64,000 bases of DNA, from NCBI GenBank assembly GCA_021613535.1, contig CP075497.1, forward strand, positions 9,548,001 through 9,612,000. Reading direction: 5' to 3'. Shown here one piece after another: positions 26,823 to 32,759 of this stretch (within the stretch, counting starts at the first letter, position 1; the number at the start of each line of letters is the position of its first letter). The position numbers and the translations under genes are program-made. Source of the DNA: Adineta vaga (taxonomy: Eukaryota > Animalia > Rotifera). A model generated the notes under the pieces. The model saw nothing but the letters and a program-made list of their open reading frames with translations. It ran no database searches and was not told the DNA's origin.

Positions 26823-28240
<1,418 letters not shown>

Positions 28241-28435
28241 AATCTAAAACAGATTCTACATTATCGTTTTTCAATAAATAATAATCTTATTGTAACCAAA
28301 ATCGGTTTACAATAATATTCTCTAAAATAGCACCCAGTAATTTTTATTTAAATAATGAGAAAAATGGAAAACAGAGTTTCTTTTTTTTTTTGCACTTTAT
28401 CATTACAAATATGAGATTGCACGGAATGAGAAGAT

Positions 28436-30339
28436 TCAAAATTCATCTTTGTTTGGTTTCGCATTATGTTGATCGATATGTAATGTTGGAAGTGAATATT
28501 TTAATCGTTTTGCTGAACGATATGCCGAATGTTCTTTAACATATTTAACCATTTTACGTACAATACGAGTAAATTCATGTTTATCAAAGGCATAATTTGT
28601 AAATTTCTTATGTGGCGTTCCTAATGTTGGATGTTTGCCTTCATCTTGAGGATAGGCTTTCTCTTCATTTTCCCAAGTATAATATTTCACACCACGAAGA
28701 CGAGCAAGATCAAGATAACAATCTTTATCTTCACAGTTATGAATTTCAAAGATTGCTGCCCAATCAGGTAAGAAAAGTAAATGAGTTAGACCAGCACCAT
28801 GCATACCTAAAATGAAAATTTTCAAATTAAACAATCATTTATACAGAAAAAAACAAAATTGTTTTCTCAGTTAGTTCTAAGCTCAAAAACACAAATATTA
28901 TCCCTTGGTGATTATTCTAAATACGGTGTTCAATCTTTAGCAAAAGCAATTCGTGCATGTTTATATATATTTACTAGAAAATTCATGTATCTAAAAGATA
29001 AGTATATTAAATCGATTCATTCGAATTAAATAAAATTTACCCATGAAAATATCAGTATTATGAGTAATATTCAATTGTTGAATGAATGGCATATTTATAT
29101 TATAATCAACAACATTGATAATATAATCATTGTTTCCATTAGTTGAAATATTTCTTAAATGATCAACGATTTCGTTAACATTTAAAATTTGTCGAAATTG
29201 TGTCGTTCGATTCAATAATGTTATGCGTATTTGATTGGATTTCAGTGGACCTAATTGTGGTATACGTAGTCGATGAACTAAGTACTGTTGAAATGAACGA
29301 AATAAACTTGTTTGTGTACATCCAGGTATCAATGGCATGTTGTAATAGAAACCTAAATGAGTTTTTTTTTGCAATGAAATAGAATGTGATGAAGATTTGT
29401 TTTGTTTATCTTACCATAAAACATTCGAGCAAGAAATGAGAAGATTACATTTTGAAAACAGACACGTTTTCCTTCGAATTCTTTGATATGTATCAGTCGA
29501 TTTGATGTAAATGCATTCCATGTCGGCGAAAAGAAACTCCAATAATCATTACTACTTGTATCCCATAAAATAATTTGAATATCTTTTGTAAATGTATTAT
29601 TCATATGTTGAGAAACATATAGATTAATAAAATCACAAAAATGATGATACATATTATAACCACTATCAAGTTTAATCAATATTGTTGGTTTTGTTATTGT
29701 TAAATCACAATGGAAAGAATTTGTCTCATTAATTTCTTTGAAAACTTGTAATTCAGAAAACCAACTTTGTAATGGACTTTTATGATCACCATTTTTAATC
29801 AAATCATCATGATTTAATTTACAATAACCACCAATATCACCAAATTTTAATATATCTTCTCGATATCGGTCATGATATTTGGATGTTTCCGTATGTCGAA
29901 AATCGATATAGATATTTTTTGCACGACAAAATTTCAAATGATCAACACATTCAAGTGATGATGATGGTGATGGTGAACATATTTCTCTCAATTCATTACG
30001 TTTTTCTGCTATATAACCGAAATCAGCTGTTCGCCAAAATTCAGAAATTTGCTTTTCTTTTGTTGTTGTCCAACCACGACTGTCATCCGGACATTGAATA
30101 AGTGAAGCATTAGTTTTACAATTCGGTTCATAACCCCAACAAGCAGTGTCGGCTGATGGAAGATTTTGAGCTTGTTTATAATATGGACATTGATCGCCAT
30201 CCAAAAGACATTGCGTATGAATGGAAGGATTATTGGTAAAGAAATAAATTGCATGTTCAAAAGGAATATCAAGATCAGACCAATTATAACTATCACCAGA
30301 AACAAAGGCAAAGAATGTGAAGAAATATATAAATAACAT
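28436..30339 (-). CDS. EOGT: EGF-domain-specific O-GlcNAc transferase (GT61)
   Basis: Three exons. Signal peptide; CWGYE; [10 protein letters not shown]; HKSPLQSW; [13 protein letters not shown]; [17 protein letters not shown]; [11 protein letters not shown]; C-terminal KDEF (KDEL-like ER retention signal). Confidence 0.95.
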
Positions 30340-30423
30340 CTAAAAATCAACGAAAGAGAAGTAATAAATGAATGTTTTTCTTTTATGAAAGAAATGAAAA
30401 AAAAAAGGAAATGATGAAAGTTC

Positions 30424-32323
30424 TTATTTCGTTGATGATGGTGTTGAAGAAGTTTTTCGCAAATCACGATCATAAAATAGAAAACTTTGAGGTTGGTTGC
30501 CAGTTTTGAATTCAAGTTTGTCTACATGCCACCTAAAGAAACACAAAAGACAAGAGTCAATCTTTGTAAAAACAAAGTATTTATAATCAAAATAAATCCT
30601 TATTTCTTTTTTTCATATTCGACCTTCATATAAATATACTATTAAAAGATACTAATCGCTTTTTAATAATCATTTGAAAAGTATTATTTTTCAAAAGACT
30701 TACTCATCATCGACTGATTCCCGTGTCGCATAACAATAAATAATTCCAGATCGCTCTGCACCACGAACAGGTATTTCAACCTAAATGAGATTTGTCATTT
30801 TGCTTATAACAAAAAAAAGAAGAAGTTTTTTTTTCTGAATTTCTTTCAACGCTGTTGTTTTTTATTCAACATAGAAAACAAAACAAAAAGAGTAAATCAC
30901 GCATCAGTACGATTCGATGATACTTGTCGTCGATTTTTCAAACGTTCTTTACTCTTTGTTACGGTTGGTTCATATTCAATTTCCAGTTTACGTTTTTTCG
31001 ATGAAGGAAGTGCTTTAATAATTTCTTTTTCAATTTCATCATCATCACCATCACCCATATCTTCCATATCTTCCACATCACTCTCTTCAAAATCTTCCAC
31101 ATATTCGACTTCTTCTCCACTTTCATCTTCCTCTTCCTTTTCTTCTTCACTTTCCGTTTCTTCTTCATCCTCTTCGTCGTCTTCTTCATCCACTAAAATA
31201 AAATTGAAAAACATAATCAACATTTCGTATCAAATCACAAGAGACTATTTACATGAAATTGTATTGACTGGAAATGTATATGTATCACCATATGTTCCTT
31301 TTTTCAATCGTTCCAATAATTCATTTTCAATCGCACGATCAATATTCGCAGCAACAAATGCTTTGTCTTCATGAACTTTTTCGCGTCTTTCAGCTTTCTT
31401 TTTAATTGGTACTAATTCTTGTTTAGCTGTTTTCTTCAACATTAAACGTCGTGTTCGAATAATGTATTGAGTTAATTTTGTTAAACGTTGTTTACATTTA
31501 TGTCGAACAAACCGTGGCCAATAGATTAAATGTTCATTGATTTGTTTCAATGCACGAAGATAATTTTCATGTAATTTAACTTTTTCCCATTGTTTTTTTG
31601 GAAAATGTGAACGTTCAACAACTTTCATATAAAGATATAAAATACCTTTTTCTTCACGAACAGTTGCATATTGAGAATTTGCTAATGGGCATGAACGACG
31701 ATCACATAAACCAGTTAGATTGTATTCATTTGAACAGAAGATTTGTGTTTTACTTTTTTGTTGTTTATAGGAACAAAATTGTCCATTGAGAACTGACCAA
31801 ATGACATCATCGTGTTGCATTGTTTTACCGAGATTTTAGATATTTTATCTAGAATGAATAAATGACTCGGTTCCTTGAACTTTTCATTGAGTCTCGATCA
31901 TAAATTTATGAATATGTAATTTATTTGAATAGTAGAGCGAAGAAAAAGAAGAAATAGTCGAATGAATAAACTTACTTGTGCACCAAGAGGTGAAAGAGTA
32001 TTGAATTTACTTGTTGTATCAACTAGTAGTGGTTCAATAGGTTCGATTAGTTTATCTACTATTGGTTTATAACCACGTGTTAATTCAAGTGCTTCTTGGT
32101 AGAAGGATGTTTGAAGAAATAGATCTACATTTAAAATACATATTGAAGAAAATAAAGATGAAAATAAGTTATATTAACTTCGAGCTTTTTGTCGAGCACG
32201 AATTTGTGCATAATAAACAGCACTTGAACCAGCAAGACCAATAACAGATGCAAATAATACTAATGGATGACCCCAACGAGATCGATTCATTTTTGGTAAT
32301 GAGTTTTTATTATTCGAAGACAT
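30424..32323 (-). CDS. COA1: Cytochrome c oxidase assembly factor 1 (COA1/MITRAC15)-like, 4 exons; intron 2 contains MAK16
   Basis: Exons 32323-32179, 32124-31976, 30780-30704 and 30532-30424 (phases 1,0,2; all GT-AG) give a 159-aa protein. It has a basic N-terminus and one TM segment ([18 protein letters not shown]), then [24 protein letters not shown]...GAQ|[34 protein letters not shown]. This follows the COA1 pattern YxxALxxL...A.l.IPVxG...G.lY....r......W.ld.l as I recall it. Confidence 0.8.
30897..31820 (-). CDS. MAK16: MAK16 60S ribosome biogenesis factor (nested in COA1 intron 2)
   Basis: [19 protein letters not shown]...[27 protein letters not shown]...[10 protein letters not shown]...[13 protein letters not shown]...[16 protein letters not shown], then one short intron, an acidic tail and LEIEYE. 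AATAAA on the minus strand at 30866-30861. Confidence 0.96.
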
Positions 32324-32759
32324 TTCAAATGAATAATTACTAAGTCAGATAGTTTTAGTATAGTATAAATGAGAGATGCTTTTTTTGTCGCAAGTATTTG
32401 ATCAAATGAAGAATACAACGTTAGAGTATAATATTTAGTAAATAATCTTATTGAATAGAGGTATAGTATATGTTAACGAATCAGATCTATGATGAGATAT
32501 TGCTCTGATTACTAGCGACATCTATCATAAAAGTATTTATTAAGAAATTCGTATTTTGATTGAAATTTTAATGAATAAATTGATTCTTTCTATAGATATT
32601 ATTCTACAGTTTATTTTGATTCATACGGATAGAAAGCTAATATCTTTTCCTATTTCATTCATATGATTTCACAGGTAAATCAGATATTTTATTGACAATA
32701 AAGAAAAGAAGTGTATTTCCTTATATGTACATTGATAGATTTCTGTGATTTGAGATTCT

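Follow-up and report, generated by a model that had tools for sequence, protein, structure and literature searches.

A MAK16 gene nested in a same-strand intron of a COA1-like gene and capped by trans-splicing in a bdelloid rotifer

In C. elegans the gene unc-17 (VAChT) lies inside the first intron of cha-1 (ChAT) on the same strand, and the two form one unit from which either mRNA can be made (PMC3875643). H13/Mcts2 is a second described pair, in which a gene nested in a host intron is tied to premature ending of the host message at an intronic polyadenylation, or poly(A), site (PMC13309782). In the spliced leader (SL) operons of nematodes, tunicates, and chaetognaths, genes are closely spaced on one strand and an SL-capped downstream gene lies near the upstream poly(A) signal (PMC7986045, PMC12460157). 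SL trans-splicing in bdelloid rotifers goes back to Pouchkina-Stantcheva and Tunnacliffe (2005, via PMC3795323) and the rotifer leader is a 23-mer ending in ACTTACCAAGAG (PMC3795323), while operons were unreported in rotifers as of a 2021 survey (PMC7986045). Here we describe a locus of the bdelloid Adineta vaga at which the complete gene for the ribosome-assembly protein MAK16 lies within an intron of a COA1-like gene, the latter of mitochondrial function. The window, i.e., the whole stretch of DNA that was analyzed, comprises 64,000 nucleotides (nt) of contig 6 (9548001-9612000); both genes are on its minus strand, and positions below are those of the window unless another contig is named.

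Two mature mRNAs are made at this locus from overlapping DNA on one strand, and the nested mRNA is capped by trans-splicing. The RNA and DNA evidence consisted of Logan contigs of four runs, with no individual reads. Three of these runs (X1, X5, and X22) are RNA-like, since across the three the introns are gone and a poly(A) tail and the leader are present, and the fourth (X19) is DNA-like and was used as a contrast for RNA joints. X1 and X5 represent two separate studies. A contig spanning two genes is not proof of a single molecule, and neither RNA starts nor RNA levels can be read from such data. The joint between COA1 exons 2 and 3 (31976|30780), which skips exactly 1195 nt with GT..AG ends, was present in contigs of X1 and X5 and missing from X19, and one X5 contig (record 19) consisted of COA1 exons 1, 2, and 3. 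MAK16 lies wholly within this single COA1 intron and is removed with it in the host mRNA. An earlier note, made from the sequence, had proposed an in-frame connection between exons 2 and 3 over 1195 nt, and it is this exact joint that the contigs of two studies contain; likewise, the complete MAK16 coding sequence (CDS) does lie on the same strand inside COA1 intron 2, and all coordinates given there for the two genes are valid on the minus strand. The host gene comprises the following features, some of them delimited by matches to P0132, a Rotaria protein described below:

32179-32398, minus strand: COA1-like exon 1 and 5' untranslated region (UTR), with the CDS at 32323-32179 (from sequence, open reading frame, and RNA contigs)
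32125-32178, minus strand: COA1 intron 1, 54 nt, GTTAAT..TAG (a joint skipping 54 nt in X1, X5, and X22)
31976-32124, minus strand: COA1 exon 2 (from the match to P0132 residues 30-78)
30781-31975, minus strand: COA1 intron 2, 1195 nt, enclosing the entire MAK16 gene (from the RNA joint)
30704-30780, minus strand: COA1 exon 3 (from a Pfam Coa1 match, P0132 residues 79-104, and the RNA joint to exon 2)
30703-30533, minus strand: COA1 intron 3, 171 nt
30424-30532, minus strand: COA1 exon 4 with the stop (from P0132 residues 105-135; conserved in four species)

Together the exons amount to 480 nt, i.e., 159 codons and a stop. The exon 2 donor reads CAA|GTAAGT (GT at 31975-31974) and its junction with exon 3 is in phase 0. 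The 54-nt joint of intron 1 was also missing from X19. The 5'-most reach of COA1 RNA was 32398, where contigs of both X5 and X22 end. Further upstream, no contig of any of the four runs, X19 included, covered 32438-32700, and X19 contigs had loose ends at 32380; this gap may reflect a difference between haplotypes or strains.

The nested message is represented by another X5 contig (record 20), which spans 30826-31850 with a 60-nt intron removed. At 30826 it carries 15 untemplated T on the plus strand, i.e., a poly(A) tail, and the intronic MAK16 poly(A) signal put forward in the earlier note is thus in use, with cleavage and polyadenylation about 30 nt past the AATAAA. At the other end (31850), the contig carries 10 loose letters, in reverse complement ACTTACCAAG, followed by the genomic AG. 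These letters match the published rotifer SL at its 3' end, and in two contigs from the runs of another bdelloid (L026 and L027) the leader was joined at the homologous MAK16 site. MAK16 mRNA therefore carries an SL joined at the AG acceptor, and the leader is not encoded at the locus. The nested gene and its surroundings within the host intron were delimited as follows:

31849-31975, minus strand: stretch bounded by the COA1 donor and the MAK16 acceptor, which with an upstream transcription start would be an outron; unbroken cover in one X22 contig (record 18)
31849-31905, minus strand: conserved non-coding block with an invariant GAGTCA, a GACTC..GAGTC inverted repeat, and ATTCTAG
31821-31848, minus strand: MAK16 5'UTR, beginning at the trans-splice site 31849|31848 (from the leader end of the RNA contig)
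31253-31820, minus strand: MAK16 exon 1 CDS, ATG at 31820 (from Pfam domains)
31193-31252, minus strand: MAK16 intron, 60 nt (a joint skipping 60 nt in X1 and X22)
30897-31192, minus strand: MAK16 exon 2 CDS with an acidic tail, stop at 30899-30897 (from sequence and open reading frame)
30826-30896, minus strand: MAK16 3'UTR, AATAAA at 30866-30861, cleavage and polyadenylation in a genomic A run at 30835-30826
30781-30825, minus strand: stretch of 45 nt from the MAK16 poly(A) site to COA1 exon 3, with a pyrimidine tract and the acceptor TTTAG

The single 60-nt intron of MAK16 had gone unmentioned in the earlier note; in X5 its joint was placed as 62 nt with 2 letters between. The intronic acceptor TTCTAG ends at 31849 (AG at 31850-31849), 127 nt from the COA1 donor, and 155 nt separate that donor from the MAK16 ATG. 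At the other end of the gene, the AATAAA lies 80 nt ahead of the COA1 exon 3 acceptor.

Searching the genome for the 12-mer ACTTACCAAGAG followed by GT returned 53 exact sites (2 for the control), which were spread over contigs 1, 2, 4, 5, and 6, formed arrays on contigs 2 and 5, and in many cases occurred in head-to-head pairs about 167 nt apart. These sites are presumed to be SL RNA genes. One copy (L011, 1330-1520) has a 5' end unlike that of the published 23-mer. The 3' end of the leader, the AG acceptor, and the multicopy SL RNA genes agree with the 2005 bdelloid work as represented in PMC3795323, where that work describes the leader and its use rather than a gene nested in a host intron.

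The acceptor at 31849 had been proposed to receive the COA1 exon 2 donor. It is used, but it takes the rotifer SL instead, and the cis joint 31976->31848 was not seen in the contigs of the four runs. Contigs lose rare forms, and a minor cis product at 31849 could exist. Read from the sequence, such a joint would extend the COA1 frame by seven more codons and stop it at the eighth, so that MAK16 would be left as a second, downstream reading frame. A different candidate joint (29975->31165) was rejected, as it had 97 letters between its two sides, sides of only 20 letters, and a counterpart in the DNA-like run; it was taken as a foreign contig sharing a short acidic-repeat match.

The cha-1/unc-17 pair is the nearest known counterpart of the COA1/MAK16 locus, as both have a complete gene in a same-strand intron, and in C. 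elegans the two products are mutually exclusive per molecule. However, no shared 5' exon cis-spliced to the nested gene was seen here and MAK16 receives an SL, MAK16 sits between coding exons of its host, and the products of the C. elegans pair belong to one pathway whereas those of COA1 and MAK16 do not.

The identity of the host gene was approached through its separate exons. Pfam Coa1 (PF08695, cytochrome oxidase assembly protein 1 / TIM21-like; curated cut-off 22 bits) matched exon 3 only, at 13.2 bits (E 0.08, profile positions 73-93), a score below the cut-off; single exons are too short for Pfam. A six-frame search of the genome with PF08695 gave no matches and was uninformative, since the controls were equally without a match. 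A profile of the exon 2 peptide from five loci was then searched against a representative library and led to P0132, a protein of 161 amino acids (aa) from Rotaria sp. Silwood1 that scores 26.8 bits for Coa1; its compact locus contains no MAK16. In the window, exons 2, 3, and 4 follow the order of residues 30-135 of this protein, at 53-77% identity, and this collinearity indicates that the exons flanking MAK16 adjoin one another within a single Coa1-family protein. Adineta steineri and Rotaria share 73-87% identity with the window in exon 1, whose translation, read by eye, shows a single hydrophobic run of about 20 residues behind a basic stretch; the predicted arrangement of one N-terminal membrane anchor and a soluble domain is the Coa1 layout. 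A homologue search with P0144, a Coa1 protein of non-bdelloid appearance, returned P0144 itself and nothing else.

A second COA1 copy is present on contig 3, where an intron of 59 nt occupies the same GAQ|VEIP position and a MYST gene follows. Its exon 2 is 57% identical to that of the window, and the corresponding Rotaria locus (that of P0132) has an intron of 121 nt at this position. Taken with the 1195-nt RNA joint, the shared intron position places the nesting beyond chance. At the contig 3 copy, MAK16 was either lost or never present.

Deposited bdelloid gene models tell a different story, according to which there is no nesting, COA1 exons 3-4 are the C-terminus of a MAK16 fusion protein, and exons 1-2 form a separate small gene. 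In three of these models (P0020, P0018, and P0026), MAK16 is fused in frame with the peptide of COA1 exons 3-4, a separate gene of 97-111 aa is called upstream, and the window has an in-frame GT at 30962-30961 that could serve such a protein. However, a joint from MAK16 to exon 3 occurs in none of the runs as opposed to two sightings of the exon 2-exon 3 joint, the MAK16 mRNA contigs pass that GT to the normal stop and poly(A) tail, and an uninterrupted locus encodes a Coa1-positive protein in which exons 2, 3, and 4 have their counterparts in order. We consider the fusion reading extremely improbable. COA1 is split in the deposited models of A. steineri (L004, 3499-5382), Rotaria magnacalcarata (L007, 3340-5751), and R. 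sordida (L009, 3488-6477), and the chimeric MAK16-COA1 models, of 305-326 aa, have no supporting RNA joint in the window species. As the bdelloid models are wrong at this locus (a truncated COA1 and a MAK16-COA1 chimera), annotation that takes trans-splicing into account is needed.

The nested gene is single-copy in the window genome. Its exon 1 matches Ribosomal_L28e (PF01778; 131.3 bits, 3.2e-38) and Mak16 (PF04874; 60.1 bits, 3.4e-16), and these two domains, both above cut-off and in this order, are followed by an acidic tail, a composition that points to the MAK16 family. The protein is 95-98% identical to the MAK16 of other bdelloids (Adineta and Rotaria), in keeping with a bdelloid affinity, and 66-70% identical to that of other animals. 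Of the names that the earlier note had given, MAK16 is upheld, and COA1 is supported indirectly, by way of P0132. In A. steineri, a fragment of MAK16 residues 2-26 (82-95% identical) also occurs in inverted orientation on the opposite strand about 400 nt upstream of COA1 (L004, 3033-3116; L006, 4-66).

The locus continues downstream with a gene that is named Glyco_transf_61 from precomputed Pfam matches on its orthologues, and which starts 85 nt past the COA1 stop:

30337-30341, minus strand: trans-splice acceptor of the Glyco_transf_61 gene, AG at 30341-30340 directly before the ATG

At 30341 an X22 contig ends in the loose letters CTTGGTAA, the leader also carried by MAK16. Same-strand genes at this locus are thus separated by short gaps, and both MAK16 and Glyco_transf_61 carry the leader, which is the spacing of operons. 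A MYST acetyltransferase gene lies about 195 nt after the glycosyltransferase stop, with an AG 3 nt ahead of its ATG (region 28238-28438).

Two contigs bridge the genes. The first (X22 record 18, 1465 nt) covers 32398-32179, 32124-31253 without a break over the COA1 donor, and 31192-30820; in other words, COA1 intron 1 and the MAK16 intron are removed, the COA1 donor is unspliced, and the end falls near the MAK16 poly(A) site. The second (X1 record 2) extends from MAK16 exon 1, lacks the MAK16 intron, and passes the poly(A) site to reach 30727 within COA1 exon 3. Both are forms expected if host-strand transcripts cross MAK16, and transcripts from the COA1 promoter plausibly do so. The proposal that one pre-mRNA yields either product thus fared unevenly: contigs leading from COA1 exon 2 into MAK16 exist, but the cis joint that it called for was unseen.

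On balance, we lean toward a true same-strand host/nested pair with operon-like processing, in which at least part of the MAK16 precursor RNA would start at the COA1 promoter. A shared precursor is suggested by the X22 bridging contig, by the 127-nt gap between donor and acceptor, and by the operon-like Glyco_transf_61 neighbor; that it accounts for most MAK16 precursors is about as probable as that it does not. Three reactions would compete for any molecule transcribed from the COA1 promoter, namely cis-splicing, trans-splicing, and cleavage at the MAK16 poly(A) site. Trans-splicing of MAK16 or cleavage at its poly(A) site would destroy the COA1 message, and cis-splicing of COA1 would discard MAK16 inside the lariat. 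A choice between COA1 and MAK16 per molecule presupposes a start of MAK16 precursors at the COA1 promoter. Under this proposal the leader, by providing the cap, would free an internal MAK16 from needing its own promoter. The split between the two products would be constitutive in appearance and would probably favor MAK16, which does not resemble a regulated switch.

We advance more tentatively, at somewhat below an even chance, the idea that MAK16 is a promoterless, intronic cistron of a COA1-MAK16-glycosyltransferase(-MYST) polycistron, with its output set by trans-splicing and polyadenylation against cis-splicing and with a layout older than the bdelloid genera. If true, this would be the first documented rotifer operon. 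The locus shares with the SL operons of other animals the short same-strand spacing and the SL-capped gene near an upstream poly(A) signal. Unlike in those operons, the internal cistron is housed by an intron of the first gene instead of following that gene, so that MAK16 excision would compete with COA1 cis-splicing, and the polycistronic precursor is here suggested by contigs alone. More generally, SL trans-splicing can let an essential gene reside among the coding exons of a same-strand host, a nesting that is tolerable because the leader supplies the cap. COA1/MAK16 offers a concrete, conserved locus at which to ask whether rotifers have operons, and one where cis-splicing, trans-splicing, and polyadenylation can be compared within 1.2 kb.

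Several points weigh against operon-like processing of a precursor from the COA1 promoter, or against the gene structure on which it is built. All evidence from the runs is contig-based, and the bridging contigs cannot prove a common precursor molecule. Positions 31874-31967 have no contig depth in X1 and X5, and in these runs the word depth of the contigs is about 30-fold higher for MAK16 than for COA1. Such depths are unsuited to ranking genes, but with a shared promoter this difference would mean that nearly all transcripts are diverted to MAK16. The last ~60 nt before the MAK16 acceptor are conserved like coding sequence, which fits an internal promoter too. Finally, no RNA contig covers COA1 exon 4, and its joint to exon 3 is a prediction from homology.

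These points bring in a rival in which MAK16 is an independent nested gene with its own promoter in or just upstream of 31905-31849, the SL merely trims a short outron, and any interplay between the genes is transcriptional interference. Across four species, the block at 31849-31905 shows 55-80% identity, as opposed to 20-30% in ordinary introns, and the MAK16 5'UTR is likewise conserved non-coding sequence. An invariant GAGTCA beside the acceptor within this block speaks for a promoter, the more so as the spacer ahead of Glyco_transf_61 is poorly conserved (its TAG|ATG is invariant in the four species). So do the contig depths in X1 and X5, which differ widely for MAK16 and COA1 and fall to nothing between donor and acceptor, and mammalian host/nested pairs operate in this way (PMC13309782). 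H13/Mcts2 is the model for such an arrangement; unlike COA1/MAK16, its nested gene has a CpG-island promoter and transcriptional interference controlled by DNA methylation, and no trans-splicing. On the other hand, in X22 record 18 the spliced COA1 exons 1-2 are continuous with MAK16 up to its poly(A) site, where the contig stops, a mere 127 nt of room is available between donor and acceptor, and the neighboring gene is SL trans-spliced at very short, operon-style spacing. The conserved block itself could be an internal promoter or else a trans-splicing or branch-site signal. We regard an own promoter as a somewhat doubtful but serious explanation.

Two further elements surround the acceptor. 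Its AG lies inside the palindrome TAGATA-AAA-TATCTA (31836-31850), and the GACTC..GAGTC repeat is located upstream (31873-31903); both are conserved in the four species. Predicted pairing at the MAK16 acceptor showed zero covariation, a result that neither supports nor refutes hairpins.

Returning to the nested pair with operon-like processing, its layout is conserved beyond the window species. The order COA1 exons 1-2, MAK16, COA1 exons 3-4 on one strand was found in A. steineri, R. magnacalcarata, and R. sordida, and the same nested order in two further bdelloid contigs (L031 and L032). In four species there is no variation in the MAK16 AATAAA, in the acceptor of COA1 exon 3, or in the first letters of that exon. 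Ratios of nonsynonymous to synonymous substitution rates (dN/dS) were 0.21-0.25 for the COA1 host exons and about 0.05-0.065 for MAK16, values low enough to indicate that both genes are kept by purifying selection. Conservation of the nesting, which the earlier note had named as a check, thus extends to related bdelloids but not to the contig 3 COA1 copy, with its 59-nt intron and no MAK16.

This retention bears on a further reading, a regulated either/or switch that would couple cytosolic ribosome biogenesis to respiratory-chain assembly, with a ratio shifting under stress or desiccation. The arrangement has persisted across bdelloid genera, the processing signals are crowded (45 nt separate the poly(A) site and the host acceptor), and the products would be mutually exclusive per molecule if the precursor were shared. 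However, the cis joint proposed for such a switch (31976->31848) was unseen, and with a free second COA1 copy on contig 3 the COA1 supply need not hang on the nested locus. We consider a regulated switch of this kind quite unlikely; regulation, or a coupling of ribosome biogenesis to respiration at COA1/MAK16, has no support and is speculation.

In L031 (389-640) and L032 (3443-3736), COA1 exons 1 and 2 are contiguous while the other introns are kept. These contigs were considered as read-through RNA, and this was rejected because the other introns are retained; they are most likely genomic DNA without COA1 intron 1, an intron that seems, from these sequences, to be missing from some bdelloid lineages. 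A further copy of the nested arrangement occurs in Didymodactylos carnosus (L022, 927-2729), where MAK16 between COA1 exons 2 and 3 is a pseudogene, about 60% identical and with at least 10 in-frame stops. COA1 exons 1-3 are recognizable in it and exon 4 was not found, and the entire nested locus on this contig may be decaying. Downstream of COA1 exon 3, L022 has no match to the glycosyltransferase or to MYST, so that it can be assigned to neither COA1 duplicate, and the Didymodactylos copy tells us only that a nested locus was duplicated at least once.

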